Positions 1,257 through 60,885 of a stretch of DNA of 64,000 bases are shown here, one piece after another (position 1 is the stretch's first letter; each line of letters begins with the position of its first letter). The notes under the pieces are model-generated. The model was given only the letters and a program-made list of their open reading frames with translations. It had not been told where the DNA came from and made no database searches. The DNA comes from Diplonema japonicum (taxonomy: Eukaryota; Protista; Euglenozoa: Diplonemea). The translations under genes and the position numbers were made by a program. The stretch is taken from contig OZ025750.1 of the NCBI GenBank assembly GCA_964019335.1, forward strand, positions 62,001-126,000, in the 5' to 3' direction.

Positions 1257-4200
1257 ATGGAGGAGGAGGGGAGGATTGTACCAGCAGGGCGCACAGCTGA
1301 AGGAAAGGCAGTTGGGGTGAGGCAGACAGGCCCGCCATGGCGGTTCTGGTACGAAGGGCGGGAGATCGCTGGTCCGGAGGGTGGGGCAGTGGAGAAGGGA
1401 AGGTACGTGGTGAAGCAGAAGGGAGGAAACCTGGAACTACTCCGGAGGGAGGTGGTGAAAGGGGAGGGATGGGCAGTGTGGATAGACGATGAGGCCCTGG
1501 GGGAGTACGAAAGGGCCCGGGTAGTGGTGCACCCCCCCTCACTCACACGCGGTGTCCCGCACCCCACTCACACCAACGGCGCTCCCCTCAACACCATCGC
1601 CGCCTTCTTCTCCTCCGGAAGACACCTCCTTGGTGGGGGTTCTTGCTGTTCTAAAACCGACCTCCCCAAACGACACCGGGGGCCGACTGTACCAGCGAAG
1701 TTCATATCGGACCATATTACTGGAGTGGTGCAAAGTGTGAAACCATCTGATAGAAAGGCCAAGGAGACCCGTCTCGTTCAGTGGTTCAAGGAGCACGAGA
1801 TGCAACTCATGTTGCAGGGCATATCACTCGGCGCGGGGTCTTTGTACAACAATTGCATCGACATGCTGCATCTCGTGGAAGAGTCGATGGTGAAGGAAGA
1901 CGAGCTCTTCTTCAGCGTTTACATCTCACAGGCGGTGGCGAAGGTCGGGCTCGCGCTTCTTCTCAACTCCGCAACTCGGTCAAAGATCGACACAAGGCTG
2001 AAAAAACTGATCAACGGTCTGCTGAAGAAGAAACCCCCAAACATGGTGTTTTACGAGCTGGAGTGGCTTCGCAAGGGCCTGGAAATCGTCAAGGAGATCG
2101 AGGATTTCGAGTGGGACACCGTGGACATCCTTATCAAATGCGTCACAAGCATCACGTCCATGAGCTTTTCAGTTGTTCTAACCGACTTGCTAAATCTAAG
2201 CAGGAAGGCCTACAGCATGGCGAAGGGCATCTCCGAGCACAACCACTACTTCGGTATCGCGGCAATCGAGCGCACGGCAGCCGTAGTGAAGAACCGATTG
2301 CTATGGTATCACCTCTTACAAGCGGATGAAAAAGCGGCGGCGAAAGCAGAGCTAAAAACGTACCTGCTAGAAGTACAAAGCGAACGTGGCAGGCTGGAGA
2401 CATGGGAGGTCGCCTTCGCGTGGGTCAAGCTCATTGCGGACATCCTCATCTTCAACCCTGCCGTCGTCACGCAAGCCAGCATCAACAAACTTCTGAAAGA
2501 TGAGAACATGGACGGGCATGACGTCACGTTAGAAGGCTTAAGGGCAAAAGGTTGGCTTGTGGAACACACCTCCGACGGTGGGAAGCACAACGTCTCAGTA
2601 CTTACAAGCTCCTTTTCAGGCCACTGGAGATCGGGTTCGACTGATGATATCACAAATATGTTGGACAAGCACCCAAGACAGCCAATCCCGAACGATTTGC
2701 AGGAGCTTCTCGTGACGGGGTCAGAAGGGTTCCACGGGCTGGCACACTTCGCGAAGATGGGGATATCGACGCCTCGGAGTCTTGTGGTCGTCCTCGAGGA
2801 AGCGAACACCCTGCTCAAGGGGAAGAAACCTGTCAATGAGATGCAACAGGGTCTGAAAGGGCTGCTCAACAACACGCTGAACGGTGCGGCGAACTTCGCA
2901 GGTCTATTCGTTGAGAATAAAGCGAACATCTGGCGTGTCCGGGACAGGGCGGTGGTGGCCTGCATCGACGTCCTCTCCAGGAACAACGTGAGCGCCCCGT
3001 GTGCAAGAGAGCTGCAGGCGACCTTGACGAACTGCGAGGTGTTCGAGCAGAACAGCGACGTTCGTCGAACCCTCAAGAACCCCGGTGTGTACAAGGAAAC
3101 AGCAGCATTTTTAAAGAAATCCTGGAAGACCCAGGAGGAGGAGGTCCAAGAGAGCATCAAGACCACGATGGACAGACTCGAGGAGCTGCAGCATTCGATG
3201 CTCAACTGCACCTTACCCAACATAACCAAAGAGCTGCGTGCAGTTATGAACGAGGTCAACAACGAGCTCGACCATCAGGTGAAGAGCCTCCAAGGAATGC
3301 AAGAAAAGCTCGGGGTGACACTTGACTTCCTAATGGGGATACAACGCAGGCAGCTCTCGATGGAGAAGAACCTAAACGACTTGTTGCGACACCTCGGCGC
3401 GGATGAGTCGATCCCCGACATCTGCAAGGAGCGAATGAAGGAAGTAAGGTTACAGAAGCAGCCCGCCGTCTACTTAACACCTTATGGCGATGCAGTCGAA
3501 GAAACACTGACAGCTGCTTCAACCGAATCCCCACCCCGAACACCTGTTCCTTGCGATAACGTAGAGCTCGAGCTTCTGGAACACGCTTGGGACATGATAG
3601 ACGACCCAACCAAGAACACCCTCCTCATCACAGGACGATCGGGAGGCGGGAAGTCAACATTCATGAAGAAGCTCCACACCGATCTGTGGAAGCACTACTG
3701 GGGGTCTCAAGAGAAAAGCAGCGTCTTCACGATACCACTCTTCTGCTCGCTCCCGGAGTTGCGCGATCCACGCTCTGGCCTCGTTGAAGAAGCCTTCGCA
3801 AAGTGCGGTGTTCAAGGACCTCTCCTCCTGCAACGCATAAAAACAGAATGCCGTGCAGGGAAGTGCCGCCTGATCTTCATCCTCGACTCGTACAACGAGA
3901 TGTGCGCCGACTACCGCTACACCAACCTGTACCAGTCCAACAACCTTAGAAAGTGGGGAGAGAAGCAATTGGAAGACGCGCCAGTAAACGCTCCTTACCC
4001 CAAGATCGTCATCACCTGTCGCCAAGAGTTCGTGGACTCCAACAGAAACTACAGGAAGTATTTCCACCCGATTCAAGAAGGGCTGAACTTCAAGGAGGCT
4101 CTCTCCGTGGTAAGGATACGCGACTTCAGAAAGCGGACGTGCGAGTACCTGAACAGGGACTATGAGGACCAGATAAAAAGGCTCAGCAGGGAGTGCGACG

Positions 4201-7200
4201 TGTCAGAAGAGTACGTAGACAGCATGACAATGAAGGCAGAGACGGTTGTTGGGGTACAAGCGGAAGGGCAGACTGAGCAGCCGTACTCATCGCTCATCGA
4301 GCAACTGAAGAAGGATCATGACCATGTCGGTGAGTTGACTACCGATGACATAAACGAGCTGACATCAGTCCCAAGCGAGAGGAAATTCCTGTCAGAACTG
4401 CAGAACATATGGTCACCCCTGAAACTGTTCCGCGCAGCGGCGAACAGTGTTGGGCAGCTTCTATCAACACCCTTCATGCTGTCCATCTTGGTGAAGGTGA
4501 TCCCTGTCATGTTCTCTGATGAAACGAACCCGTCCAGGTCCAAGGCACTCCTGAAGTACGACACGTACCACACATTCGTGAACCTGCTGTTGGACAAGAG
4601 CCTTCCAAATCTCGTCGCAAAGCACACCACAGTCCCGGAGGGCAGATTGAGGTTGGACTTCGAGAACTACTGCAAAGGCTTGGCAAGGCTGATGACCCTT
4701 GAAAACCAAGTCCGTGTTCATTACGAGAGCTCCGGGGAGCTGTTTCAGCAACCGGCTACAAAATACACCGAGTACTTCTCATCTGACAACACGCTTCTGA
4801 AGGACATCAGAGAAGGGGCGCCACTGCAGACGGAGCAAGCAGGGGTAGGCGGGAGGTACTACGTTTTCATACACCAATCGATACAAGAGTTCTTCGTGGC
4901 GCAGCTAGTCTACGACGCTGTGATGCGGTTCCCGATGCTGGAGAACCTCTCTCTAGTAAAAGGCTTTGTGTCGTACTTCTTAGGCTGCGATTCGGTCACA
5001 ACACATGACCAGCTGAAGGCTATCCTTCCAAAGAGGAAGACGCACTTCTTCAACACATTCGAAAGCATCGATGGGGTACCAGAAACACAATCGCAAATCA
5101 TGGCAGCGCTCGAGGCGGACTGGTCGTACGTGAACACAGCACTGGTCGTCAACGACACTGCGGTGATGTCGCAGTTCCTCACGCCAAAGGTCCGAGCTGA
5201 CAAGAAATTTCAACGAGCACTCCTGTCACTGGTGGAACTCTCGAAGCTCCCTTACGCACAGGTCCCCGCCTCAATGGCAATCAGCATTCTAAACTCAGCG
5301 GTTAGCTTCTCAGGTATGGATCTGAGCGGTATCAGGGTTCCTAAGGCGGAACTGTCCAGTGCTGTGTTCCACGAGACGGACCTCTCCGGGGCGGATCTGT
5401 GCGGTTCGGATCTTTCCGGCTCGTACTTTCACAAAACGCGTTTGGACGGTGCTGACATGAAGGACGTGGACTTCAAACAAGAACCCGACATCATGCACAG
5501 GGGGGTCCACGCCATCGCGACGAAGCCCAAGGCCAACCTGTGGGCTACAGTGTCTCACAACACCATCAAGGTGGGCAAGCACTCAATCCCGTTCCTCGAG
5601 GGAAAGCCGCCTGACTTCCGCGTGGCATTCGAATGCAAATTCCACGGCGACACCTTACGCGTCGCCTGCAGAGATGGCATCTATGACGTGACGATGGAAG
5701 ACGGGAAACTGAGAAAAGAGAAAACCGCCAACCAACTCAACTTCTGCACGAACAAAGGCCGCATCACCGCTTTAAAATTCTCGAACGACGGCAGCACGCT
5801 AATCGCAGGCAGTAGTAAAGACGGTATCCAGATAATCGACGCAAATGGTGTTCAAAAATTGTTGGACGCGCCTCTTAATGGGGATAATGCGTCTGCCCTT
5901 GCAGTACGGAGTACCCATGGGGTTGCTACACATGTTGCCATGATGCTGGGCAGTAACGGTGAGAGGAAGACGTCCTTCGGAAAATGCGGCGTGGCAAATG
6001 GTAAACTACTGTACACCGAATCTCACTCGACAAAGCCTCACCAAGCCCTCGAATACAGCCCCAACGGGAGGTACCTCGCAATGGGCGGGGACCATCCGAA
6101 GCTTATCGACCTCGACACCAATTCGGAGAAATGGATGTCAGATGTGTTCAAAGAAAAGGTCCATATAACAGATGTGGACTTCTCTCCAAACGGCCAGGTC
6201 CTCGCAATGGGCAGCAGAACCGACGTATGCACGTGGTCCGTTCAAACTGGAATGCAACTACGCCAGTTCAACGTGTTGCTCCGCCTTTACAGCATGGGCC
6301 TTTCCGATTCACAACTGTGCATTTCTTCCGGATCGCACACAAACGAAACGGTAAAAATGTGGGATATCAAAGAGGAGGATAACGCGGCTAAGCTTGCAAA
6401 GCACGCTGAAAACCCTAAAGCGTGTCTCATAACACCTGGTGAGAGGCACTTGCTGACGTCCGTCGGCACCGACAAAGTCATTCGATGGGATTTGGAAACA
6501 GGCGAGATGCTAGACTCAACACATAATCACGTCGATGATTACTTCTCGGGGAAGAAGGTTCACTTGCTCCGCGATATTCTCAAGGGCGTTCAGGCCGCCG
6601 AGCGAGGACAAGCCCTCGCTTTACAAGACAGACCAGCCGACTTAATCTCTCCGGATCTACGCCACGCCTTCATCGGGGTCTCGACAACCGAAAAACCAAC
6701 GATCGTCCGCCTCACCGGACATGAGGATCCTGGGATCAACCGCCGCGTCTCATGCAACATCAGAAACAGATGCTTCTCAGAAGATGGTGTTAAATACGCG
6801 TACAGATTTAGAAACAGTATATTTGTTGGTGATGTCGGTGAACTTATTGAACGTGGTGATGCGTTACGCTCTTTCGGGGAAAGCGGCGAGGTGACAGAAC
6901 GACAGGTGGAGGGAATTGTAGTGCACAACCCGGACAATGAACGCGAGATTGAAACCGGGATGACTGGGATCAAGCATTTCTGTTTTTCGAAAGACGGTTC
7001 ACGGATCGCCGTTGGCTCCACGGATTCTATGCTGCGGACCAGTATTCTCATTTACGATTCATCGACAGCCGGTCTCGTGGCGCAATTGACAGTTAACGAT
7101 GTCATGAAGGAGAGGATGTCGTTCACAAAAAGCTTTCTTCTTGTGCATTGCAAGAGTAATACTTTTTTGTGGAAGTGGAGCGGGGTGAAATGGCTGCTCC

Positions 7201-7580
7201 ATAGAAGGATCTCAGCGTCTCCCTTGGATTTTAATGCTGACATCGAAGGCGTCAAGAACCTCTCACAGCATAACCTAGACATCCTTCAACAAAAGAACGA
7301 TGTTGGCAGCATGATTCAAAAGATTGTCGTGGGCAAGACGGGCGATACCTTTTGCGACGTCACCATCGATGCACGGAGAACTGGTACTGCATGCTGGAGG
7401 GTGATCACCGCCACAACCGATTTAAATGATAATCTTGCAGCGGGAAGCGTCGACGTTTCAGGAGGTGCATCAACAAGCTTCACTGCACAATGGGACGAGA
7501 AGCACGAGGAGAGCTTGTTGGTCATCAAGGTGAAGGATGAGACCGGTTTCTGTGAAGAGCATGAGATTTCACTTAAATAA
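1257..7580 (+). CDS. NLR-like STAND protein (2107 aa): LLGG-ending leader, helical/ARM-like region, coiled coil, NACHT NTPase, pentapeptide repeats, WD40 propeller, C-terminal beta-rich extension
   Basis: Intact long ORF. Walker A GRSGGGKST (3633-3659), Walker B-like LIFILDSYNE (3870-3899), sensor VITCR, TPFML, FIHQSIQEFF winged-helix motif, pentapeptide repeats DLSGADLCGSDLSGS (~5310-5475), WD-type repeats (FSPNGQVLA..., VKMWD, VIRWD), and the closing motif NLSQHNLDILQQK. Confidence 0.92.
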   Translation: MEEEGRIVPAGRTAEGKAVGVRQTGPPWRFWYEGREIAGPEGGAVEKGRYVVKQKGGNLELLRREVVKGEGWAVWIDDEALGEYERARVVVHPPSLTRGVPHPTHTNGAPLNTIAAFFSSGRHLLGGGSCCSKTDLPKRHRGPTVPAKFISDHITGVVQSVKPSDRKAKETRLVQWFKEHEMQLMLQGISLGAGSLYNNCIDMLHLVEESMVKEDELFFSVYISQAVAKVGLALLLNSATRSKIDTRLKKLINGLLKKKPPNMVFYELEWLRKGLEIVKEIEDFEWDTVDILIKCVTSITSMSFSVVLTDLLNLSRKAYSMAKGISEHNHYFGIAAIERTAAVVKNRLLWYHLLQADEKAAAKAELKTYLLEVQSERGRLETWEVAFAWVKLIADILIFNPAVVTQASINKLLKDENMDGHDVTLEGLRAKGWLVEHTSDGGKHNVSVLTSSFSGHWRSGSTDDITNMLDKHPRQPIPNDLQELLVTGSEGFHGLAHFAKMGISTPRSLVVVLEEANTLLKGKKPVNEMQQGLKGLLNNTLNGAANFAGLFVENKANIWRVRDRAVVACIDVLSRNNVSAPCARELQATLTNCEVFEQNSDVRRTLKNPGVYKETAAFLKKSWKTQEEEVQESIKTTMDRLEELQHSMLNCTLPNITKELRAVMNEVNNELDHQVKSLQGMQEKLGVTLDFLMGIQRRQLSMEKNLNDLLRHLGADESIPDICKERMKEVRLQKQPAVYLTPYGDAVEETLTAASTESPPRTPVPCDNVELELLEHAWDMIDDPTKNTLLITGRSGGGKSTFMKKLHTDLWKHYWGSQEKSSVFTIPLFCSLPELRDPRSGLVEEAFAKCGVQGPLLLQRIKTECRAGKCRLIFILDSYNEMCADYRYTNLYQSNNLRKWGEKQLEDAPVNAPYPKIVITCRQEFVDSNRNYRKYFHPIQEGLNFKEALSVVRIRDFRKRTCEYLNRDYEDQIKRLSRECDVSEEYVDSMTMKAETVVGVQAEGQTEQPYSSLIEQLKKDHDHVGELTTDDINELTSVPSERKFLSELQNIWSPLKLFRAAANSVGQLLSTPFMLSILVKVIPVMFSDETNPSRSKALLKYDTYHTFVNLLLDKSLPNLVAKHTTVPEGRLRLDFENYCKGLARLMTLENQVRVHYESSGELFQQPATKYTEYFSSDNTLLKDIREGAPLQTEQAGVGGRYYVFIHQSIQEFFVAQLVYDAVMRFPMLENLSLVKGFVSYFLGCDSVTTHDQLKAILPKRKTHFFNTFESIDGVPETQSQIMAALEADWSYVNTALVVNDTAVMSQFLTPKVRADKKFQRALLSLVELSKLPYAQVPASMAISILNSAVSFSGMDLSGIRVPKAELSSAVFHETDLSGADLCGSDLSGSYFHKTRLDGADMKDVDFKQEPDIMHRGVHAIATKPKANLWATVSHNTIKVGKHSIPFLEGKPPDFRVAFECKFHGDTLRVACRDGIYDVTMEDGKLRKEKTANQLNFCTNKGRITALKFSNDGSTLIAGSSKDGIQIIDANGVQKLLDAPLNGDNASALAVRSTHGVATHVAMMLGSNGERKTSFGKCGVANGKLLYTESHSTKPHQALEYSPNGRYLAMGGDHPKLIDLDTNSEKWMSDVFKEKVHITDVDFSPNGQVLAMGSRTDVCTWSVQTGMQLRQFNVLLRLYSMGLSDSQLCISSGSHTNETVKMWDIKEEDNAAKLAKHAENPKACLITPGERHLLTSVGTDKVIRWDLETGEMLDSTHNHVDDYFSGKKVHLLRDILKGVQAAERGQALALQDRPADLISPDLRHAFIGVSTTEKPTIVRLTGHEDPGINRRVSCNIRNRCFSEDGVKYAYRFRNSIFVGDVGELIERGDALRSFGESGEVTERQVEGIVVHNPDNEREIETGMTGIKHFCFSKDGSRIAVGSTDSMLRTSILIYDSSTAGLVAQLTVNDVMKERMSFTKSFLLVHCKSNTFLWKWSGVKWLLHRRISASPLDFNADIEGVKNLSQHNLDILQQKNDVGSMIQKIVVGKTGDTFCDVTIDARRTGTACWRVITATTDLNDNLAAGSVDVSGGASTSFTAQWDEKHEESLLVIKVKDETGFCEEHEISLK

Positions 7581-9118: not shown

Positions 9119-12100
9119 ATGGAGGAGGAGGGGAGGATTGTACCAGCAGGGCGCACAGCTGAAGGAAAGGCAGTTGGGGTGAGGCAGACAGGCCCGCCAT
9201 GGCGGTTCTGGTACGAAGGGCGGGAGATCGCTGGTCCGGAGGGTGGGGCAGTGGAGAAGGGAAGGTACGTGGTGAAGCAGAAGGGAGGAAACCTGGAACT
9301 ACTCCGGAGGGAGGTGGTGAAAGGGGAGGGATGGGCAGTGTGGATAGACGATGAGGCCCTGGGGGAGTACGAAAGGGCCCGGGTAGTGGTGCACCCCCCC
9401 TCACTCACACGCGGTGTCCCGCACCCCACTCACACCAACGGCGCTCCCCTCAACACCATCGCCGCCTTCTTCTCCTCCGGAAGACACCTCCTTGGTGGGG
9501 GCAACCTCCTTTCTTGTCCCTGTTCCACGAAGATCGACCCCACCACCTCAACCACTGATGCTACCGATGTGAACTTTAACGCCTTCCTCCCCTCGGCCTC
9601 CTTGCACAGAAAGGTCATTACCATCATCGAAGCAGATGAGGACCACGAAGACACGGATGCCAAGAAGGTACAGCTCGTTCAGTGGTTCAAGGAAAACGAA
9701 GCCAGGTTCGCACTGGGGACAAGGCTCTCCGACGACAGCGCGAAGCAGCTGTGCGAGAGCATCAAGATGATGCTGCAGCTGCTTGCAGAGGCCGTTGAGA
9801 GGGAAGACGAGCTCTTCTTCAGCATTTACATTTCGCAGGCGGTGGCGAAGGTCGGGCTCGTGCTCCTCTTGTACAAGCGTAAGGCAGCTGGGTCCGACAA
9901 AGAGCTGAAGCGCGCTTGCAACGATCTGGCGAACGAGCTGCGAGGGGACAGCACCAAGAACATGGTGTTCTACGAGCTGGAGTGGCTTCGCAAAGGGCTG
10001 GCCGTAACAGAGGAACAGTTCACCATGTCACGAGCCGACATCCTCGTCACGTGCGTCAAAAGCATTGCGAGTGCCTCTCCCGCACCTGTCATCGAAGAGT
10101 TACTGGGCCTAGGCCGGCAGGCTTTCACAGTTCAAAAATCCATTTCAGAGCACAACCACTACTTTGGGATTGCGGCGATCGAGCGCACGACGGCAGTTGT
10201 GAAGACCTGGCTGCTAGGAAGGTACCACCTGGCAGGGGAAGCAGAAAAGAAAGAAGCAGTGGCGAAACTGAGGGAGCAGCTGTTCGAGATGCAGAGCGAG
10301 CGGGCCAACCTGAGGAAATGGGAGGTCGCCTTCGCGTGGGTGAAACTCATGGCGGACATCCTCACCTTCCGCCCCGCCATCGTGACAGAGGACAGCATCA
10401 AAAGTCTTGCAGCCCGCGACAAAAGCAAAGCACTGGACAGAAGCGGGCTCACATTGGACAGGCTGAGGGAACAAGGGTGGGTGGCGGCGCTTACCTTTGA
10501 AACAGGGGTGACTGTGTACGTGCTATCGGAGTCCCTTCCCGGTGTTTGGAGAGCAGACCCGTGCTTGACAGGTCACGTCACGAAGCAGCTTCGCACGCTC
10601 CCAAGGCTTGCTGTCCCCCAGCACCTTCAGGAGCTTCTCGTGAAGGAAGAATCGGCGTTCGGTGAGGACGAGGGACAGAAGAAGAAGTTCCACGGTCTGG
10701 TTCACTTTGCAAAGATGGGGATGTCGACACCGCAGGGTCTGATGAGGGTGCTCGAGGAGGCGGGGAAATGGCTTGAGGAACGAAGGCCTGTCGGCGAATC
10801 TGAGGAGGGTCTGCAAGGCTTGTACAACAAGGGATTGAACGGTGCAGCGGACTATGCACAGCTGTTCCTCGAGAACGAGAAGGACATCTGGCGACTTCGG
10901 GACAGGGCGGTGGTGGCCTGCTGTGAGGTTATTGGCAGTGTTGGGAAGGAACAATGCAAAGGGCAGTGGACACAAGAACTGCAAGCAACACTGACAACAT
11001 GCAAGGTGTTCGAGCAGAACAGCAACGTACGCAGAAGCCTCGGAAGCCCCGATGTGTACAAACGAACAGCAGCCTTCTTAAAAACATCCTGGAAGACCCA
11101 AGAGGAGGAGGTCCTGGAGAGCATCAGAACCACGATGGACAGACTCGAGGAGCTGCAGCAAAAGCTTCTGTACTGCGAGCCAACAACGAGGGGGAAACTG
11201 GAGGATGTGATGAAGAGTGTTCACAGAGACCTGGGCTTCCAGGTGAGAAGCCTCGTGGGGAAGGCGGAGAAGCTCGATATAGGGCTTGAGTTCCTGTTGG
11301 ACATGCAGCAGAGGCAGTACGCGATGGAGAGAGACCTGAAAGAGCTGAAGGGCGACATGAAGAAGCTGATGATTCACTTCGAGATGGACGCCTCAATCCC
11401 CGACATCTGCAAGGAGCGCATGACAGAGGTGGTGACGCATATGAAGTGCGGTGAAAGTGTGTACATAGCACTGTACGGCGATGAGGTGGAAGTTGACCAG
11501 GTTATCGAGAACAAGTTGTCGTCCGACTATTTAGAACACGAGGGGTCCATCAGCCCTGTGACGGCGTTCATCGGGCCTCCACCCATGACGCTCATACCTG
11601 TGTACAATAACGCAAACAGCCAGTTCGCAGCTGTTGGGGTTGGCCTTGGTCTCGATGCCGCCGCGCTGCGCAAGCGGGTTGTAGACCAGATGGTCGAGAG
11701 GTTATGCTACAAGGAAGCCTTTTGGAAGGACGAAACTAAAGAAGCGACCAATGAAGCTTGGGAGGAATACGTCGAAAACATGCGGAAGGAGACTACCCGC
11801 GGCGATACCCTGACCCTCAGGGCGTGCGCTGAGGTGCTCCGCACAATCATCTGGGTACTTGACGCTGCGAACCAGACCTTCACAAGGGCATGGGCTCCTG
11901 AGGGAGTGCACCATGTCACAGTCGTCGCATTCAGCCCTCCGAAGTACAACGGTGTGTCCGCCACAGAGAGCCTGCTCTCGTTGCTGCGAACTAGCAAGTA
12001 CGCGTCGATACAACGAAGCGAGAATGTCGGAGAAGGGGACAACGACACCTTCCTCCCCTCCAGCCCCTGTCTTTCTTCTCCCGGTCAGACCCCCGAGCTG

Positions 12101-15100
12101 ATGTGCCACGTGCAGACCATGCTCGCTGACGCCACCAAAAACACCCTCCTTATCACAGGAAAGTCCGGAAGTGGCAAATCCACATTCATGAAGAGACTCC
12201 ATGTCGCCTTGTGGGAAGAGTACTGGGGAGTCCTTCGAGGCGGCGAAGGTGTATTTACAATCCCTGTGTTCTGCTCGCTCCCTGAGCTGCGTGACCCATG
12301 CTCGAGCCTTGTTGAGGAAGCCTTCGCAAAGTGGGGTGTTCAAGGACCTCTCCTCCGCCGGATACGGAAAGACTGCCGTGCAGGGAAGTGCCGCCTGATC
12401 TTCATCCTCGACTCGTACAACGAGATGAGCGCCGACCACCAGTACACCAACCTGTACCAGTCCAACAACCTTAGAAAGTGGGGAGAGAAGCAATTGGATG
12501 ACAAACCTGGCAACGCCCCCTTCCCCAAGGTCATCGTCACCTCGCGTTATGAGCACCTCGGGTCTCACAGCCACTACCGGAGCTTCTTTTATCCCGTGCA
12601 GGAGCACACAAGGGTGGATTTCAAGGACGCTTTCTGTGAAGTGAGGATACGGGACTTCAGAAAGCGGACGTGCGAGTACCTGAACAGGGACTATGAGGAC
12701 CAGATGGAGAAGCTTCGCTTGAAACATGGGGTGTCGGTGGAGTACGTGAATGAGCTGGTGAAGATGTCCAAGGAAACAGCCGTCGTTGTTCAGACAGAAG
12801 AGCAGACTGAGAAGCCCTATACATCGCCCGTCGAGGAACTGAAGAAGAAGCTTGTTGCGTCCTCACCTACGTACGACAGCCACGACCACGAAAACAAGTG
12901 TACAATTGACGATATAAACAAGTTGACATCGGTCTCTGGTGAGAGGAGGTTCCTGTCAGAACTGCAGAACATATGGTCGCCCCTGAAACTGTTCCGAGCA
13001 GCGGCGAACAGTGTTGGGCAGCTTCGATCGACACCGTTCATGCTGTCCATCTTGGTGAAGGTGATCCCCATCATGTTCTCTGAGGACAACGACGAGGGGT
13101 ACATGTGTGAGAAGTTCCTTCGAATGATGCCAGAGGGTGTTGGCGAGCAGCTCCTTCCCCTTGCGAAACACTATGAGTTCGACCCATCGCACGCCGCCAA
13201 GCTCCTCGTAGGTCTCGACGACAAAACCAAGCACACCCTATCCCTCGAGGAGACGACACGCCTTGCGCTTCATACCTGCAAGCTCCCCAAAGCTATCCTG
13301 AAGTACGACACGTACCACACATTCGTGAACCAGTTGTTCGACAAGAGCCTTCCAAAGCTCAGCGCAAAGCACAGCTCCATTCACGTCGAAGACCTCAGGT
13401 CGGACCTCCAGAACTTCTGTAAAACCTTCGCAAGGCAGATGACGTTAAACAACAAGGTGCGTGTTCACTACGCCAGCTCAGGTAGGGAGTTCCGATCACG
13501 GTCGTGTTGGGATGAGCACTTTTCATCAGACAGCACGCTTCTGAAGGACATCAGAGATGGAGCACCACTGCAGACGGAGCAGGCAGGAGTAGGCGGGAGG
13601 TACTACGCCTTTATTCATAAGTCTATACAAGAGTCGTTCGTAGCGCAGCTTATCTACGACTCTATAATGCGGTTCCCGATGCTGGAAAACCTCCCTGTGG
13701 TGAAAGGGTTTGTGTCTTACTTTCTGAACTGCCGTTCGGTTGCTGACTGGAACCAGCTGAAGACGGTGCTACCCGGCATGCGAATGCACTTCGTGAACAC
13801 ATGTGCCAGCAAGTTCCACATTGATAGGAACGTCGTCCCCGCCACATTGACGCAGATCGTCGATGTAGTGGAGGCGGACTGGTCACGTTTGAACACAGCA
13901 CTCGTCATCAACGATAAGGCGGTGATGTCGCAGTTCCTCACGCCAAAGGTCCGAGCTGACAAGAAATTTCAACGAGCACTCCTGTCACTGGTGGAACTCT
14001 CGAAGCTCCCTTACGCACAGGTCCCCGCCTCAATGGCAATCAGCATTCTAAACTCAGCGGTTAGCTTCTCAGGTATGGATCTGAGCGGTATCAGGGTTCC
14101 TAAGGCGGAACTGTCCAGTGCTGTGTTCCACGAGACGGACCTCTCCGGGGCGGATCTGTGCGGTGCAAACTTGTCAAAGGCGTACTTTCACAAAACGCGT
14201 TTGGACGGTGCTGACATGAAGGACGTGGACTTCAAACAGGAGCCCGACATCACGCACAGGGGGGTGAGGAGCATCGCGACCACCACTAAACAGGGAGAAG
14301 AACTGTGGGCCACGGTGTCTTGGGACGCAATCAGAGTAGGAAGGTACGCTGCTCTGAACTTCGATGGCGGCACAACACTGTGGGACCCTATCGGCTGCAA
14401 GTTCCATGGTGACATACTGCGAGTGGCAGCCACAACAGGCATTTACGACGTGGAGATGAACAACGAAACGCTGAACATCAAGAAGTCGTCCCACCAGCTG
14501 AAGTTCAACTCGAATGAGACCATCAAAATGCTGACGTTTTCAAACGACGGCAGCACGCTGATCGCCGGGACGAACAAGGGCAACATCCAGGTCATCGATG
14601 CCAACGGTGTCCACCCTCTGTACAACGCCCCTTTGAGAGAAAGGATATGGAGCCTCGCGATCCTCAGCGAACAAGAGTCGGGCAATTCAATCCAAACTGC
14701 CATTGGATACAAGGAAGAGGCGTACCACGCTCCGTGCGATTCAGATGAAACTGGGCTCCAGTACACACATGGGAGACCCGACGGAAATCCAATTCCAATC
14801 ACAGAATCTTGTTTGCAATACGACCCGCATGGAAGGTACCTTGCAGTGGTCGGTGGGAACAGGAGCGGGCACAAGAACATGCTGCTGGAGTGCAGGATAA
14901 TCGACATAAGAAAAGGAGGGGTAAAGACGGTGATACGGGGGCAGGAAAAGATGTCACAAACAGTACAGTTTTCACCAGACGGACAGGTCCTCGCAATCGG
15001 CGTTTATTCCGGAATCCAAACATGGTCTGTAAGCACCGGTATTGAGCTTAGAACATTCGAGCTCCCCATGGCGGTAACAGTTTGCTTCTCTGATGCGAGA

Positions 15101-16564
15101 ATGGCAGCGGCTTCCGTTTCAGATAACGCGGTGAAAATGTGGAACATACAAGACTCGGAGAAGATCAGAGGATTAGCCGGGCATACCGGTGGGATCGGCG
15201 AGGCGATCATCACACCAGACGGTCAGTACATCGTGACCTCCGGCCTTGTCGATCAAAAGATAAAAAAATGGGATTTAGAAACCGGCGAGCTGCTTGTGTC
15301 ATCAACTCCTTGCAACTCCGCTTTAACATGCGTGTCGCTATCGGGAGCTGCGAACGTACATTGGCAAGCTGAAGGGGTGGCGTGGTGTGCGGATTTAATA
15401 TGCCCAGATTTTCATTACAAGAGGTACCACACGCTGGTGGCGAGAGAAGGCGATGTTTTGCTGTCTGGGAAGAAACAAATGCATGTTTTGACGGTCCGGT
15501 CGCGGAGCTCTAAAATGCCTCCTGCGATCACACTGTCGCCGGACTGCCGGCACGCAATTGTTTACGATGTCAAAACAAACCTGCAGACAATATTGAAACT
15601 CGCTGACATCGACGAAAGCGTCGGCCGCCCGACATCCTCCTGCTCCGGGCATGGATTAGCTTGCTTCTCCAGCGACGGTTCTCAATTCGCGTTTATAGGA
15701 AAACGGCAGCAACCAAACGTCATCAAAATCGGCTCCGTGTCCGATCTTGTTTCGAAGGATATGAAACAAACCCACGGAATGTGGAGCCTTGTCTTGAGAA
15801 CATCAGACCGACGAGGGAGAGTGTCTGAATGTTCCATCGACTACGAGGAGGTTGTTCTGAAGGTGAAGCCTCTCGAGATTCACGGCGCACCGCCAATGTG
15901 TTTTTCTCAAGACGGCCGTTACATCGCGTACAGCCCGAAGACATCGGGTACCGGGTGCAGGCAGAGCCAGATTTTTATCGACGTTGCTGGTAAGGTGTCT
16001 AAAAAGGTTCGAAAAGGTGTGCCTTTGCACACCATAAATGTGTACCGCGGAACTGTCAGCCAGATATCTTTCAAAGGCGATTATCTTCTCGCGGTCTGCC
16101 GGCAAAGTTCTATGTTGTGGAAACGAAGCATACTTGGCGAAAGCGCTCGCTTGCGACGCGACACGCACGACCTAGCGCTTGTTCATCAGAACGGAAAGAG
16201 AGTTTGCACGTGGTTGGTTCATAGAGAGTTTTCCAAGGTTGAGACACCGTTAGAGTGTATTGATTGCGGTGTTGACACTACTCTGAATCTGTCTGGGAAC
16301 AACAGGGAGATACTCAGGCAGCGGCAGGGCGGGGCGAGCATACCGGGACTGTCTATCGTCCCGCCAGAAATCGGGCTTGCAGCCACGATGCCGAGGGTGA
16401 GCCGGGGGCGGAGTGCCATGAGGGATAAAAAAAAGAAGAAGAATGGGATTTTCCGTGATGAGATTATACAGCAGAAGCGTGCGATGTCGTGCAACCGTTC
16501 AGAAGAGAGCCTCGCGAAGGTTACCAAGGCAACGGGCAACAAGCCGGTTTTACTCGAGGCGTGA
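9119..16564 (+). CDS. NLR-like STAND protein paralog (2481 aa): same architecture plus an inserted pseudo-OTU domain before the NACHT
   Basis: Intact ORF. First 128 aa identical to the upstream paralog. Walker A GKSGSGKST (from 12158), LIFILDSYNE, FIHKSIQESF, pentapeptide repeats, WD40 repeats (GHTGGIGEAIITPDGQYIVTSG...IKKWD), NLSGNNREILRQR. An insertion of about 200 aa lies at ~11490-12090. Confidence 0.92.
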   Translation: MEEEGRIVPAGRTAEGKAVGVRQTGPPWRFWYEGREIAGPEGGAVEKGRYVVKQKGGNLELLRREVVKGEGWAVWIDDEALGEYERARVVVHPPSLTRGVPHPTHTNGAPLNTIAAFFSSGRHLLGGGNLLSCPCSTKIDPTTSTTDATDVNFNAFLPSASLHRKVITIIEADEDHEDTDAKKVQLVQWFKENEARFALGTRLSDDSAKQLCESIKMMLQLLAEAVEREDELFFSIYISQAVAKVGLVLLLYKRKAAGSDKELKRACNDLANELRGDSTKNMVFYELEWLRKGLAVTEEQFTMSRADILVTCVKSIASASPAPVIEELLGLGRQAFTVQKSISEHNHYFGIAAIERTTAVVKTWLLGRYHLAGEAEKKEAVAKLREQLFEMQSERANLRKWEVAFAWVKLMADILTFRPAIVTEDSIKSLAARDKSKALDRSGLTLDRLREQGWVAALTFETGVTVYVLSESLPGVWRADPCLTGHVTKQLRTLPRLAVPQHLQELLVKEESAFGEDEGQKKKFHGLVHFAKMGMSTPQGLMRVLEEAGKWLEERRPVGESEEGLQGLYNKGLNGAADYAQLFLENEKDIWRLRDRAVVACCEVIGSVGKEQCKGQWTQELQATLTTCKVFEQNSNVRRSLGSPDVYKRTAAFLKTSWKTQEEEVLESIRTTMDRLEELQQKLLYCEPTTRGKLEDVMKSVHRDLGFQVRSLVGKAEKLDIGLEFLLDMQQRQYAMERDLKELKGDMKKLMIHFEMDASIPDICKERMTEVVTHMKCGESVYIALYGDEVEVDQVIENKLSSDYLEHEGSISPVTAFIGPPPMTLIPVYNNANSQFAAVGVGLGLDAAALRKRVVDQMVERLCYKEAFWKDETKEATNEAWEEYVENMRKETTRGDTLTLRACAEVLRTIIWVLDAANQTFTRAWAPEGVHHVTVVAFSPPKYNGVSATESLLSLLRTSKYASIQRSENVGEGDNDTFLPSSPCLSSPGQTPELMCHVQTMLADATKNTLLITGKSGSGKSTFMKRLHVALWEEYWGVLRGGEGVFTIPVFCSLPELRDPCSSLVEEAFAKWGVQGPLLRRIRKDCRAGKCRLIFILDSYNEMSADHQYTNLYQSNNLRKWGEKQLDDKPGNAPFPKVIVTSRYEHLGSHSHYRSFFYPVQEHTRVDFKDAFCEVRIRDFRKRTCEYLNRDYEDQMEKLRLKHGVSVEYVNELVKMSKETAVVVQTEEQTEKPYTSPVEELKKKLVASSPTYDSHDHENKCTIDDINKLTSVSGERRFLSELQNIWSPLKLFRAAANSVGQLRSTPFMLSILVKVIPIMFSEDNDEGYMCEKFLRMMPEGVGEQLLPLAKHYEFDPSHAAKLLVGLDDKTKHTLSLEETTRLALHTCKLPKAILKYDTYHTFVNQLFDKSLPKLSAKHSSIHVEDLRSDLQNFCKTFARQMTLNNKVRVHYASSGREFRSRSCWDEHFSSDSTLLKDIRDGAPLQTEQAGVGGRYYAFIHKSIQESFVAQLIYDSIMRFPMLENLPVVKGFVSYFLNCRSVADWNQLKTVLPGMRMHFVNTCASKFHIDRNVVPATLTQIVDVVEADWSRLNTALVINDKAVMSQFLTPKVRADKKFQRALLSLVELSKLPYAQVPASMAISILNSAVSFSGMDLSGIRVPKAELSSAVFHETDLSGADLCGANLSKAYFHKTRLDGADMKDVDFKQEPDITHRGVRSIATTTKQGEELWATVSWDAIRVGRYAALNFDGGTTLWDPIGCKFHGDILRVAATTGIYDVEMNNETLNIKKSSHQLKFNSNETIKMLTFSNDGSTLIAGTNKGNIQVIDANGVHPLYNAPLRERIWSLAILSEQESGNSIQTAIGYKEEAYHAPCDSDETGLQYTHGRPDGNPIPITESCLQYDPHGRYLAVVGGNRSGHKNMLLECRIIDIRKGGVKTVIRGQEKMSQTVQFSPDGQVLAIGVYSGIQTWSVSTGIELRTFELPMAVTVCFSDARMAAASVSDNAVKMWNIQDSEKIRGLAGHTGGIGEAIITPDGQYIVTSGLVDQKIKKWDLETGELLVSSTPCNSALTCVSLSGAANVHWQAEGVAWCADLICPDFHYKRYHTLVAREGDVLLSGKKQMHVLTVRSRSSKMPPAITLSPDCRHAIVYDVKTNLQTILKLADIDESVGRPTSSCSGHGLACFSSDGSQFAFIGKRQQPNVIKIGSVSDLVSKDMKQTHGMWSLVLRTSDRRGRVSECSIDYEEVVLKVKPLEIHGAPPMCFSQDGRYIAYSPKTSGTGCRQSQIFIDVAGKVSKKVRKGVPLHTINVYRGTVSQISFKGDYLLAVCRQSSMLWKRSILGESARLRRDTHDLALVHQNGKRVCTWLVHREFSKVETPLECIDCGVDTTLNLSGNNREILRQRQGGASIPGLSIVPPEIGLAATMPRVSRGRSAMRDKKKKKNGIFRDEIIQQKRAMSCNRSEESLAKVTKATGNKPVLLEA
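11585..11956 (+). other. OTU deubiquitinase-like domain with substituted catalytic residues, embedded in CDS 9119-16564
   Basis: IPVYNNANSQFAAV aligns to the OTU Cys loop xxVxGDGNCQFRAx, followed by LRKRVVDQM. WEEYVENMRKETTRGDTLTLRACAEVL aligns to YxxxMxxxGxWGDxxTLxAxA. PPKYNGV aligns to xHYNSx. The domain is absent from the paralog. Confidence 0.78.
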
Positions 16565-57298: not shown

Positions 57299-59686
57299 AT
57301 GTGTTACCCTCGCACCCTTTTCGTAATAATATTCCTGGCGACACAATACCTACAGTGCACAAAGGCGCAAACAGTTGTAGGGAGGTATGCAGGGGGCTTC
57401 GCCACCCAGTACGCCCTCCACCCCGATGGCGACATCGTGTACATAGCTGACGGCCCTCATGGAGTAGCAGTGGTGGATGTCAGCAGAGTCCCAAACGCTT
57501 CCAACCCGGGAAATGCAGCCATCTTGAAGGGAAATATACTGGGCATCGACGCGCAGGCCATTGCCTACGACAGCGATGCCTTGTACATTGTAGGCAGCGC
57601 TGCTGTTCTGTACAAGTATGACGTATCCACAAAGACAGCCCCTGTGAAGATGGGGGAATCCGCACCAGACCAGAAGGGTTTTGCAAGTGCAGTCACACTG
57701 CTCCCCGGGGGTACCCGGGCCTACACGTGCCATGAAGGAGGTATATCTGAGTACGATGTGACAGGGGCTACACCGGTGTACATCGCCAACACCATCACAC
57801 CCCCAAAGTGCTACAACTTAGCTATCAACGCCGCCCACAGGCGGTTGTACGCATTGGTTCAAGACTCTGCTGTGGACTTCATCGACATGTACCCCATAGG
57901 GCCTGTCGACGAGATTGTTGCCGTGGGTGCTTACAACGACCTCCCCGACCCTGGGGTCTCGCTGTCGGTTTCGTCCGACGGGGCAACATGCTTCGTGACA
58001 ACCAGCTCCAATGCCTTCTTCATGCTGCTATGCAACGAAACCGGGACTTCGGTGTGGACGGAGGTCAACACAACGCATCAAGGACTTGCCGGCATCGCAC
58101 GCTTCGACCCTGGCGATCGTACCTTCGCAACTACTGGAGACGGGCAGGTTGTTGTTTACGACATGAAGCCTTCCACCGACTATATTGGGTACTCTAGCGG
58201 GGCGGTCATTGGCGGTGTTGGACAGAAGGGTGTCGGCCTGCACGGCACACACCTCTACATGTGCATGGGGAATTACGGGCTTGTTATTGTTGATGTTTCT
58301 GCCCAGATGACGCCGCCTCAAGCCACTCCTTTCCCCTCGACGCCTGCACCCGACACACATCCACCGGTGACGCTAGCTCCGGATACCTTGCCTCCTGGCA
58401 CATTGCCTCCTTCGACAGGTGCTCCAGACACTCCAGCGCCTTCCACTGCTGTGCCAATTCGATCAGATGCTCCCAGAGCTGTGGCGCTTTCTTCTTCTCC
58501 TGCCACCTTTGCGCCGCTGACAGCAACGCCGACAGCAGCTCCTGGGACAGAGGCCCCAGCAGTGGTGAAGGAGGAGCAGATCAACACAGCAGGGTCGGTG
58601 GCAGCAGTCACATCTGTTGCAGCGGCCGGTGCAGCGGCAGGGGCAGCAACACGTCTCGTTGTCGTGAGCCAAGGGTGTCTCTTGAACGGGAAGCAGAAGC
58701 TCCCTCGTGCACTGCACCCCACACAGATGGAGGTGTGGGGGTCTGAAACCGCGGGAATGGTGATCGGGAACTTCGCCATCATCGCCGGGTTCACTGCCCT
58801 GTGCTTTGTGGTGCTGCAGGTGGCCTCTCGTTGGGGTTTGGCTGTGTTGCCGAAGTTGTTGAAGAACCTCGACACCCAAGGCCTTCTTCGCTTCCCCTCC
58901 GCACCTCTGTTCGTGTTCCAGCTTCTGTACCAAGGGACCACACTCGGGTCGATCCACCTCCTCGCGCAGCCACCACACACAGGGGGCTTCCTTGTTGGGG
59001 CAGTGTCGATGTGTGTGTGCATCGCTGTTCCACTTTATGTGTTCCGTGTGATGACACGCGACGTCCCTTGGACAGGGGTGTACATGCCGGAGACAGACTG
59101 TGGGCAGGTTCGGGCCCTGTTCCTTGGCCCCGGTGAGTGGGTCTCAACGACCCCCATGAACCACTGGATAAACAGGTACGGGTCGGTGGTGCGGACCTAC
59201 AGGCAGGAGGCGGCATGGTTCTCCATCATCGAGTTCTCGGCGAGTCTTGCGATATCGGGGATACAGGCGGCGGAGACAGACACGTACACAGGGTGCGGGC
59301 ACAAGAAGGTCTTCACGGCTATCATCTTCTTCATAATGTTGGCTGTGGAGGCGGTGGTGTGGCCTCATGCAAGGCCAAGGGATAATGCGACAGACTTCAC
59401 GATGCTCGGGGTGCAAGGGACAGCGATGCTCCTGATGTCAGTGGGGTACTATGAGGGGACGACTGTTCATTGGACTTTCGATGTGGCTTCGGACCTTCTA
59501 ATGGCGTCTGTGGTGGTGCTTCTTGTGAAGGTTGCGATGGATCTGTGCAGCGAAGGGTACATCTTCTTCTCGGGGAGGCGGCAGGCTCTACAAGATTCTA
59601 CGTTTTCGTGCAATACGCCTTACTTGTCATCTTTCTCTTTCAGCAACCTTTCAGCCACCTGTGACACCCTTGATATTGAACTTTGA
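57299..59686 (+). CDS. Surface receptor family copy 6 (start ATG 57299; shortest stalk, short tail lacking RRxSLP)
   Basis: Signal peptide MCYPRTLFVIIFLATQYLQCTKAQ, propeller, stalk of about 85 aa. TM-module DNA 58580-59223 matches copy 5 (50874-51517). Confidence 0.9.
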   Translation: MCYPRTLFVIIFLATQYLQCTKAQTVVGRYAGGFATQYALHPDGDIVYIADGPHGVAVVDVSRVPNASNPGNAAILKGNILGIDAQAIAYDSDALYIVGSAAVLYKYDVSTKTAPVKMGESAPDQKGFASAVTLLPGGTRAYTCHEGGISEYDVTGATPVYIANTITPPKCYNLAINAAHRRLYALVQDSAVDFIDMYPIGPVDEIVAVGAYNDLPDPGVSLSVSSDGATCFVTTSSNAFFMLLCNETGTSVWTEVNTTHQGLAGIARFDPGDRTFATTGDGQVVVYDMKPSTDYIGYSSGAVIGGVGQKGVGLHGTHLYMCMGNYGLVIVDVSAQMTPPQATPFPSTPAPDTHPPVTLAPDTLPPGTLPPSTGAPDTPAPSTAVPIRSDAPRAVALSSSPATFAPLTATPTAAPGTEAPAVVKEEQINTAGSVAAVTSVAAAGAAAGAATRLVVVSQGCLLNGKQKLPRALHPTQMEVWGSETAGMVIGNFAIIAGFTALCFVVLQVASRWGLAVLPKLLKNLDTQGLLRFPSAPLFVFQLLYQGTTLGSIHLLAQPPHTGGFLVGAVSMCVCIAVPLYVFRVMTRDVPWTGVYMPETDCGQVRALFLGPGEWVSTTPMNHWINRYGSVVRTYRQEAAWFSIIEFSASLAISGIQAAETDTYTGCGHKKVFTAIIFFIMLAVEAVVWPHARPRDNATDFTMLGVQGTAMLLMSVGYYEGTTVHWTFDVASDLLMASVVVLLVKVAMDLCSEGYIFFSGRRQALQDSTFSCNTPYLSSFSFSNLSATCDTLDIEL

Positions 59687-60460
59687 TGCCTTTCTGTTTC
59701 CCTTTTCTTTTCTTTTTTATTTTTTTCTTTGGCCAGAGGCCGTCCGCTGTGCCAAAGCAAGAAAAGTAGGGTGCAGTATTCTCATTTTTATTATAAGTAT
59801 TTAAATCTTTTTTTTTTTTTTTTTTTTTTTTTTGCGACTAATTAATTTCTTGTTAAAACACTACAATTGTTGAAAGAATAATGAGTAAATTCATATATTA
59901 TATATTAGATAGAATAACGCCCGTCGACATCAACATAGTGTGCCAAACTAGTTTTCTTTTTTTTTTTTTTTTTTTTTTTTTTCATACAGTTCCTACGGTA
60001 CCACACGGATGTGCATTTGGGATCGATGTTTGTGGGACCCACCAGTGTCCATTTGGATTGGACAAAGAAGGGAAATAAAACGGTGACATTAAGGCCAACC
60101 ACAGCCTGCCTCAATGAGACATTTCTATTACTGTTGACACCACCACATCCAAAATCTTTTTCGGTTTTATTTTTTAAAGCCCGGTGGTCTGATAGAATGA
60201 ACTGTATCAACCTATTTCTACACTCTCCCCCCCCCTTTTTTTTGTTTCTTTTTTTTTGTCTTAACAATATTATTGTCGAGACTAAAAACTAGTTTGATGG
60301 CAGCGTAATGAGCTAATTTTATTAGGTAAAACTCCGCTCGTGCGACACAAACAAATGAAGCGTCAAACTAGTTTTTTTTTTTTTTTTTGTTTTGTTTCTT
60401 ATTTCACGATATTGAAAGATATTTGTTTTTTTTTTTTTTTTTTTTTTTTTCTTTCTTTTT

Positions 60461-60885
60461 TTAATTTCACTCTTCGTCATTTTCTTCACTCACTAGTGGC
60501 CTCATAATTTAACGCGAAATGGCCATTATTTAACTAGTTAAGTCGTGGGATTTTGGAGTGGAAAAATAGGTGTCATCGTGGAAGAAGAAATGTCCCAGCC
60601 CCTTGAAGATTCTTTTTGGGGATGGTATTTTGACTATTTTCGGCCCTTAAAAGTGGGAATGCCACGGCGAAATAGGCTGGCCTGCGTGAAAAGAAGAGCA
60701 GTGAAAGCAGTGAATGGTGAGTGACTCAAAATGACGAAGAGTGAAATAAAAACTACTTACTTGCTGCCAAATGAGCCATTATTTAACACTCGTTACTGTT
60801 CCTTTGCACGAGGGCCCGCAGCAAGAAATTCGGCAAACTCGAGTTAAATAATGACTCATTATTTGTTGGCAATAAATAGTTATTA
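60461..60885 (-). mobile_element. Inverted copy of the bipartite hairpin + TIR element
   Basis: Reverse-complement match to 52511-52958, with the same TIRs. Confidence 0.78.

Follow-up and report, generated by a model that had tools for sequence, protein, structure and literature searches.

The window analysed here is a stretch of 64,000 nucleotides from the genome of Diplonema japonicum (assembly GCA_964019335.1, contig OZ025750.1, positions 62,001 to 126,000 of the forward strand), a member of the diplonemids, which are deep-branching and ecologically very abundant protists. The + strand of this window contains two long, uninterrupted open reading frames (ORFs), arranged in tandem, with products that share 56% identity: paralog 1 (1257-7580, 2107 aa) and paralog 2 (9119-16564, 2481 aa). 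Both have the same layout, namely a leader, an N-terminal region, a NACHT domain, pentapeptide repeats and WD40 repeats. In paralog 2, the leader comprises 128 aa ending in LLGGG (9119-9502), and the P-loop NTPase core of the NACHT domain spans aa 1009-1109 (12143-12445; Pfam PF05729, 33.3 bits against a cut-off of 26.7), including a Walker A motif (GKSGSGKST, aa 1014-1022, approximately 12158-12184) and a Walker B-like motif (FILDSYNE, aa 1095, 12401). Farther downstream follow pentapeptide repeats at aa 1663-1702 (14105-14224; PF00805, 42.3 bits against a cut-off of 20.2) and a WD40 beta-propeller region at aa ~1766-2084 (14414-15370), which is matched by several WD40 propeller families (38 bits for PF00400) and probably continues with further blades beyond aa ~2084. 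With a NACHT profile, Walker A and B motifs and a C-terminal repeat region of the sensor type, paralog 2 has the make-up of a NACHT STAND NTPase, that is, of an NLR-like protein. Between its N-terminal region and its NACHT domain, paralog 2 additionally carries an insert resembling an OTU deubiquitinase domain. Paralog 1 has the same layout without this insert and with only a short linker at approximately 3483-3635.

The segment specific to paralog 2 is ~205 aa long (aa ~795-995; 11501-12103) and replaces a linker of 12-22 aa found in the other copies of the gene. It is located just before the Walker A motif, in the spacer that joins the N-terminal region to the NACHT ATPase. The shared motifs YGD and TKNTLLITG are separated by 42 aa in paralog 1, compared to 220 aa in paralog 2, corresponding to a net insert of 178 aa. 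Our alignments thus agree with an earlier, sequence-only reading of this DNA, which had described an insert of about 200 aa before Walker A that paralog 1 lacks. One of the four related copies has the insert; it is absent from paralog 1, from a paralog on another contig (C95), and from a truncated copy upstream of the window, and the spacer of the C95 paralog is even shorter than that of paralog 1. With three copies to compare and no rooted tree, the most parsimonious history is that paralog 2 gained the segment, a single loss being a formal alternative. The GC content at third codon positions is 0.687 in the insert and 0.672 in the remainder of paralog 2, and since the insert thus matches its host gene, it was not captured recently. 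A search around the insert for a target-site duplication or other insertion scars returned only short chance repeats, and when more distant NACHT paralogs on contigs C91 and C81 were surveyed for inserted domains, no Pfam family was found at E<=1e-5.

Several lines of evidence identify the core of the insert as an OTU domain. The Pfam OTU family (PF02338, curated cut-off 23.3 bits) matches the whole protein at 28.3 bits and the insert alone at 31.9 bits (E 2e-7). The match (aa 845-918) covers profile positions 24-91 of 128, the partial coverage being due to the divergence of both catalytic ends. A profile search of the PDB with the insert and its relatives found OTUD3 at 1.4e-13, and also Otu1 and OTUD5. 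An AlphaFold model of the insert, built on an alignment of 50 sequences, has a predicted local distance difference test (pLDDT) score of 83-97 for aa 820-966. Foldseek searches with this model gave 42 PDB matches at E<1e-3, and all among the matches listed were OTU domains; upon superposition with VIA-align, the model and OTUD3 (4bou) agreed with a Z score of 16.4 and a root-mean-square deviation (rmsd) of 2.6 Å over 128 residues. As modelled, the insert is a compact OTU-fold domain of ~147 aa (aa 820-966; 11576-12016) suspended on two linkers that are predicted to be disordered, one N-terminal (aa 795-819; 11501-11575; pLDDT 37-41) and one C-terminal (aa 967-995; 12017-12103; pLDDT 44-62). 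The sequence-only reading had recognised the OTU motifs in the core and had proposed Pfam, AlphaFold and Foldseek as checks, and an OTU fold is indeed what these methods predict. The end that it gave for the domain needs to be moved, as the fold continues for ~20 aa more, to aa ~966 (12016).

The residues that make up the catalytic centre of active OTU enzymes are largely replaced in this domain. OTU catalysis needs a Cys and a His, and Cys-to-Ser mutants of OTU enzymes are the standard catalytically dead controls. In paralog 2, the Cys loop, DGNC in the family, reads NANS (aa 831-834; 11609-11620), with Ser834 encoded by the AGC codon at 11618. The WGD motif, which is YGD in the nearest relatives, reads RGD (aa 894-896, CGC GGC GAT; 11798-11806), and the HYD or HYN motif reads KYN (aa 942-944; 11942-11950), with Lys942 encoded by AAG at 11942. 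All of these residues and codons are as reported in the sequence-only reading, and they align with the DGNC, W/YGD and HYD motifs of active OTUs. With the Cys replaced by Ser and the His lost, the domain would be dead as a cysteine protease, and the earlier claim of a catalytically dead OTU domain in an NLR-like protein is supported by the replacement of the Cys, the His, the Asp and Gly of the Cys loop, and the Trp. The third position of the triad is occupied by Asn944; either Asp or Asn is found here in OTUs, so this residue would not be disabling by itself. In OTULIN, for example, the triad consists of Cys129, His339 and Asn341, and Asn serves as the third residue (PMC7862380).

The pattern of these losses is far from even. 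In a set of 49 other OTUs, 16 columns are at least 90% conserved, and paralog 2 has retained 11 of them (Asn833, Gln835, Phe836, Arg851, Tyr884, Gly895, Asp896, Thr899, Leu900, Ala902 and Ile911). The five changed columns, i.e., the Asp, Gly and Cys of the Cys loop, the Trp and the His, all fall within the six columns of the active site, and none of the ten structural columns has changed (hypergeometric p = 6/4368 = 0.0014, or ~0.013 with the Trp assigned to the structural columns). The Asp, Gly and Cys of the Cys loop and the His are 100% conserved in the 49 other OTUs, and the Trp, replaced by Arg894 in paralog 2, is 94% conserved; the Gly and Asp of the same WGD motif are invariant, and are those retained as Gly895 and Asp896. 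Furthermore, a profile made from eight OTUs borne on mobile elements, without the insert, scores the insert at 94 bits, compared to 82-127 bits for active members that were left out in turn. On these measures, which could be indirect signs of purifying selection on the captured domain, the OTU domain of paralog 2 does not look like randomly decaying sequence.

The gene appears to be expressed with the insert in place. The exact protein of 2481 aa is present in EukProt (EP01064_Diplonema_japonicum_P007015) as the product of a Trinity transcript marked 'complete'. The insert is therefore retained in the mRNA; its removal by splicing was one of the outcomes that, according to the sequence-only reading, would have refuted the proposal. 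Contigs of four public runs, for which it is not on record whether RNA or DNA was sequenced, also cross the insert and both of its flanks with zero differences. Candidate splice forms suggested by joints at 11423->12269 and 13083->13296 (run X6), and by others, were rejected as cross-mapping of paralog 1: a loose end at 11396 encodes LLRHLGADES of paralog 1, and the only joint that skips the insert is a paralog 1 contig mapped across it. A comparison of the two paralogs gave a ratio of nonsynonymous to synonymous substitution rates (dN/dS) of ~0.3 along most of the gene, with dS ~1 or saturated, showing that the host gene is under purifying selection. Word-indexed searches for orthologs among proteins of the same length class as paralog 2, using either the insert or aa 560-1330, returned only paralog 2 itself and a distant NACHT protein from Cymbomonas. 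In one additional run (X1), which stems from another organism, we observed ~5% of the sampled words of window positions 10800-12800; this could be a related species with a conserved part of the gene family, and might be a source of an ortholog.

To trace the origin of the insert, we searched the entire 62.5-Mb assembly with it and obtained 67 weak matches, none exceeding 29% identity. The best of these head ORFs for which Pfam gives the domain order OTU-APE-RT or OTU-RT, i.e., an OTU domain followed by a reverse transcriptase (RT) with or without an APE endonuclease, and which are ORF2 proteins of long interspersed nuclear elements (LINEs). The D. japonicum ORF2 OTUs that match the insert all have canonical DGNC, WGD and HYD motifs. 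None of the single-copy OTU loci that the Pfam model detects in the same genome appears in the match list of the insert, save for a single weak case. A phmmer search of 1.84 billion representative proteins gave only 11 matches at E<1e-3. At the top was a multi-copy OTU cluster from D. papillatum (37% identity, E 7e-9), of which one member continues into an endonuclease-like stretch; the others were D. papillatum OTU-APE-RT proteins, a protein combining an OTU domain with a DDE_1 transposase, a D. japonicum LINE transcript, two rust-fungus OTU proteins and two environmental proteins. An OTU domain at the N-terminus of a LINE ORF2 has also been described from Symbiodinium (PMC13405545).

A maximum-likelihood tree of 77 OTU domains points in the same direction. 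The cellular OTUs sampled for it came from plants, algae and other organisms outside the diplonemids. In this tree, the insert groups with the D. papillatum element OTUs (support 99/88), with the D. japonicum LINE OTUs as sister group (98/83), and the resulting clade is separate from the sampled plant, algal and other cellular OTUs. Nesting inside a clade of element-borne domains, here with support 99/88, is what would be expected of a domesticated transposable-element domain. By its sequence, the OTU domain of paralog 2 is shown to belong to the lineage of OTUs that head ORF2 of diplonemid LINEs. That its nearest relatives are LINE ORF2 OTUs and not cellular deubiquitinases is, to judge from these comparisons, new relative to the sequence-only reading. 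Apart from the predicted fold, the insert and the diplonemid ORF2 OTUs (27-37% identity) have in common the core motifs QFAA, LR.RVVD, Y.E.M, GD..TL.A and IWVLD. They differ in that the DGNC, W/YGD and HYD motifs are intact in the LINE copies, which precede an endonuclease and a reverse transcriptase, whereas the copy in the NLR-like protein is without the conserved catalytic motifs and resides inside a cellular STAND protein, where a Pfam search found no endonuclease or RT remnant. Cellular OTUs (OTUD3, OTUD5/DUBA, OTUD1, yeast Otu1 and Otu2) match the model best in structure, over ~125-130 residues (Z 13-16, rmsd 2.5-3.4 Å), but have only 10-17% sequence identity to the insert, which is without the catalytic Cys and His and falls outside the sampled cellular group in the tree.

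The explanation that we favour, and to which we would give about an even chance of being correct, is that the insert is an OTU domain captured from a retrotransposon and that it now acts as a non-catalytic binding module, i.e., a pseudo-protease. According to this explanation, the OTU domain of a LINE ORF2 would have been captured into the spacer of paralog 2, and selection would have retained the OTU fold as catalysis was abandoned. The resulting pseudo-OTU would most likely be a sensor or regulatory domain beside the NACHT switch and would bind either a ubiquitin-like C-terminal tail or a partner of the LINE protease domain. Its occupancy would then gate the opening or oligomerisation of the NACHT domain, in the manner of the integrated domains of plant NLRs. 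OTU domains ancestrally bind the ubiquitin-like ...GG tail, and our guess at candidate ligands would include such a tail, the LLGG leader of the gene family, and a partner that the ORF2 OTU has in the LINE or in the host.

Several points weigh against this explanation. The insert is known from one gene in one genome only, phmmer found nothing above 37% identity, and the searches taken together gave no ortholog in any collection. The branch leading to the insert has a length of 3.4 changes per site, the second longest in the tree, and its exact placement is uncertain; a branch of this length fits relaxed constraint as well as it fits a new function. The fold model depends on the alignment, as a control prediction from the single sequence was uninformative (pLDDT 37.6). 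In the analysis of conserved columns, we took the Trp to be part of the active site by analogy with viral OTU structures, and an immune-receptor role of the NACHT-WD40 protein is suggested by its architecture only. Lastly, OTULINL, the one OTU pseudo-enzyme that has been studied in depth, no longer binds ubiquitin either (PMC7862380), so that ubiquitin binding by the pseudo-OTU of paralog 2 cannot be assumed.

A serious, though in our estimate somewhat unlikely, alternative is that the insert is a neutral passenger. Here, a piece of LINE ORF2 would have been exonised in frame in a permissive linker, where it is tolerated, has no function and decays slowly, its reading frame being held only by selection on the downstream NACHT-WD40 part. 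The occurrence of the insert in one paralog of one species, with no ortholog found, would be readily explained in this way, as would its long terminal branch, its destroyed catalytic centre and its location in a disordered spacer; plant NLRs likewise contain retrotransposon domains of unproven use (PMC4759884). A passenger would not, however, be expected to restrict its losses to the active site while keeping all 10-11 other highly conserved positions (p 0.0014), nor to score within the range of its active relatives against their profile and to yield a confident alignment-based fold. The base composition, being that of the host gene, indicates that the insert is not recent, yet its homology is still clear, and with a nearest relative that is just 37% identical, it must have survived for long. 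The loss pattern and the profile score, in particular, make a neutral passenger less likely.

A further possibility, which we consider improbable, is the one put forward in the sequence-only reading, namely that the insert is an integrated decoy. Integrated decoys of plants copy host proteins that are targeted by effectors. By analogy, the insert would mimic a cellular OTU deubiquitinase on which effectors act, whether from pathogens or from Holosporaceae endosymbionts, and binding of the effector would trigger the NLR. In accordance with such a role, a non-canonical domain adjoins NACHT, its fold is kept and its catalysis lost, as in many decoys, and D. japonicum does harbour intracellular bacteria of the Holosporaceae (PMC13598402). 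The presence of the domain in just one of four copies also fits a decoy, but derivation from an effector-targeted host protein is not borne out: among the sequences compared, the insert is closest to OTUs of LINEs and to transposase-linked OTUs rather than to cellular ones, and the single-copy OTU loci of the genome are, with the one weak exception, not among the matches of the insert. Moreover, the paralogs are arranged in tandem on the same strand and not as a head-to-head pair of sensor and helper.

Since the insert nests among LINE ORF2 OTUs, any bait would be a copy of a retrotransposon protease and not of a cellular deubiquitinase. We therefore also considered the idea, which we likewise hold to be a long shot, that a retrotransposon-derived dead protease serves as bait: the pseudo-OTU would keep the binding surface of the LINE OTU, and the NLR would watch for retrotransposon or deubiquitinase activity. 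The captured ligand could be a LINE-encoded partner, a host factor engaged by the LINE protease, or a ...GG tail such as that of the LLGG leader. If true, this would be a transposon-sensing or protease-tripwire NLR of a protist, with a domain taken from the very element under watch. Ser-Lys dyads occur in other protease clans, such as those of LexA and signal peptidase, although we know of no Ser-Lys enzyme with a papain fold. We can practically dismiss the notion that Ser834 and Lys942 form such a dyad in a serine hydrolase built on the OTU scaffold, for although both catalytic positions have become residues of that type and the frame of the pocket (Asn833, Gln835, Phe836, Gly895, Asp896) is retained, three further residues are missing, namely the Asp and Gly of the Cys loop and the Trp next to the oxyanion hole, and Cys-to-Ser OTU mutants serve as dead controls.

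If the OTU domain was indeed captured from a LINE and retained as a binding module, paralog 2 combines three known kinds of protein, namely an NLR with an integrated domain, a pseudo-deubiquitinase and a domesticated element domain. As for the first, plant NLRs with integrated domains (RRS1 with WRKY, RGA5 and Pik-1 with HMA) resemble paralog 2 in having a non-canonical domain within a STAND/NLR protein in one member of a set of clustered paralogs. They differ in being NB-ARC-LRR proteins of plants that copy a host effector target and are arranged head to head, whereas paralog 2 is a NACHT-WD40 protein of a protist with a LINE protease as donor and a same-strand tandem arrangement. In the plant proteins, the original activity of the integrated domain is often lost, and surveys list both retrotransposon domains and Peptidase_C48 (the Ulp1 protease) among these domains, without functional evidence (PMC4759884). 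As for the second, OTULINL (FAM105A) and other pseudo-deubiquitinases share with the insert an OTU fold, a broken triad and occurrence in an expressed protein, and a non-catalytic role, as scaffold or in binding, is presumed for them (PMC7862380). OTULINL, however, is a stand-alone protein paralogous to a cellular enzyme, has kept its His and is membrane-anchored, whereas the domain in paralog 2 appears to be retrotransposon-derived, has lost both Cys and His, and is part of a NACHT-WD40 protein. A search of the available literature revealed neither an OTU domain joined to a NACHT or NLR architecture nor NLR-like genes of diplonemids.

The NACHT-WD40 protein of this diplonemid would thus hold an integrated domain with a donor that can be traced to a LINE, its catalytic centre apparently removed selectively and its fold kept. 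NLRs with integrated domains are known chiefly from plants, and if the pseudo-OTU is functional, the integration of domains into STAND receptors would extend to the euglenozoans, transposable elements would be shown to be a source of sensor modules, and aa 815-970 would provide a defined handle on what LINE-borne OTU domains bind. Even as a passenger, the insert would be a clean example of a large receptor gene in which a retrotransposon domain was exonised in frame.

OTU domains are abundant in the D. japonicum genome, where the Pfam model gives at least 112 matches, most of them multi-copy and many only a few kb from contig ends. More than 30 contigs have near-identical copies of OTU retrotransposons at a distance of 2-14 kb from their ends (e.g., C9:6630, C14:2751 and C31:6562; further copies are at C40:6468, C75:6581 and C105:6714). 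At the end of another contig (C99:343385-361774), a unit of 6021 bp that contains an OTU-RT ORF of ~1800 aa occurs four times in head-to-tail order, forming a tandem array of a LINE-like element. No conserved LxGG processing sites were found in the LINE polyproteins, only scattered RGG motifs just upstream of some element OTUs, and a link between the leader of the NACHT-WD40 paralogs and the LINE protease is therefore unsupported so far. Within the clade nearest to the insert, several element-borne OTUs, namely P0003 (aa 2-5), P0009 (aa 230-234) and P0006 (aa 82-85), though not every member, have an RGG(G) or LGG motif that precedes the OTU domain by a few dozen residues. This motif might be a self-processing site of the ubiquitin-tail type.

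The leader common to paralogs 1 and 2 is itself unusual. Only one of its 384 bases differs between 9119-9502 and 1257-1640, whereas dS is ~1 or saturated in the rest of the two genes, and the 400 bases upstream of each are mutually unrelated. This indicates that the leader was homogenised by a recent gene conversion confined to it. A Pfam search with the leader gave no match, and the N-terminal region of paralog 2 (~650-670 aa) was matched neither in Pfam nor in the ESM Atlas. Compared to the defence-system profiles of PADLOC, paralog 2 gave no match of note beyond its P-loop. At the protein level, the two paralogs are also 100% identical over aa ~1600-1710, in the pentapeptide region. Paralog 2 carries a second specific insert of ~62-70 aa in the NACHT-associated region (approximately 13082-13290; aa ~1322-1390), which is absent in paralog 1 and has no Pfam match; it is this insert that paralog 1 maps across at the joint 13083->13296 of run X6.

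Finally, two further members of the gene family deserve mention. The C95 paralog (C95:51136-57998) is split into an ORF of 1428 aa, containing a variant of the leader and the NACHT domain, and a separate ORF of 718 aa with the pentapeptide and WD40 repeats; a frameshift, an intron or decay into a pseudogene could each account for the split. The third tandem copy, which lies shortly before the window at 58190-60853 of the contig, has the same 128-aa leader at its start and tracks paralog 1 closely to ~aa 700. Beyond this point its sequence turns into proline-rich repeats in tandem, with units such as GDIPPPGFEEPLAA..., and it ends at 888 aa without a NACHT domain. This copy may be a truncated or decoy-like paralog.

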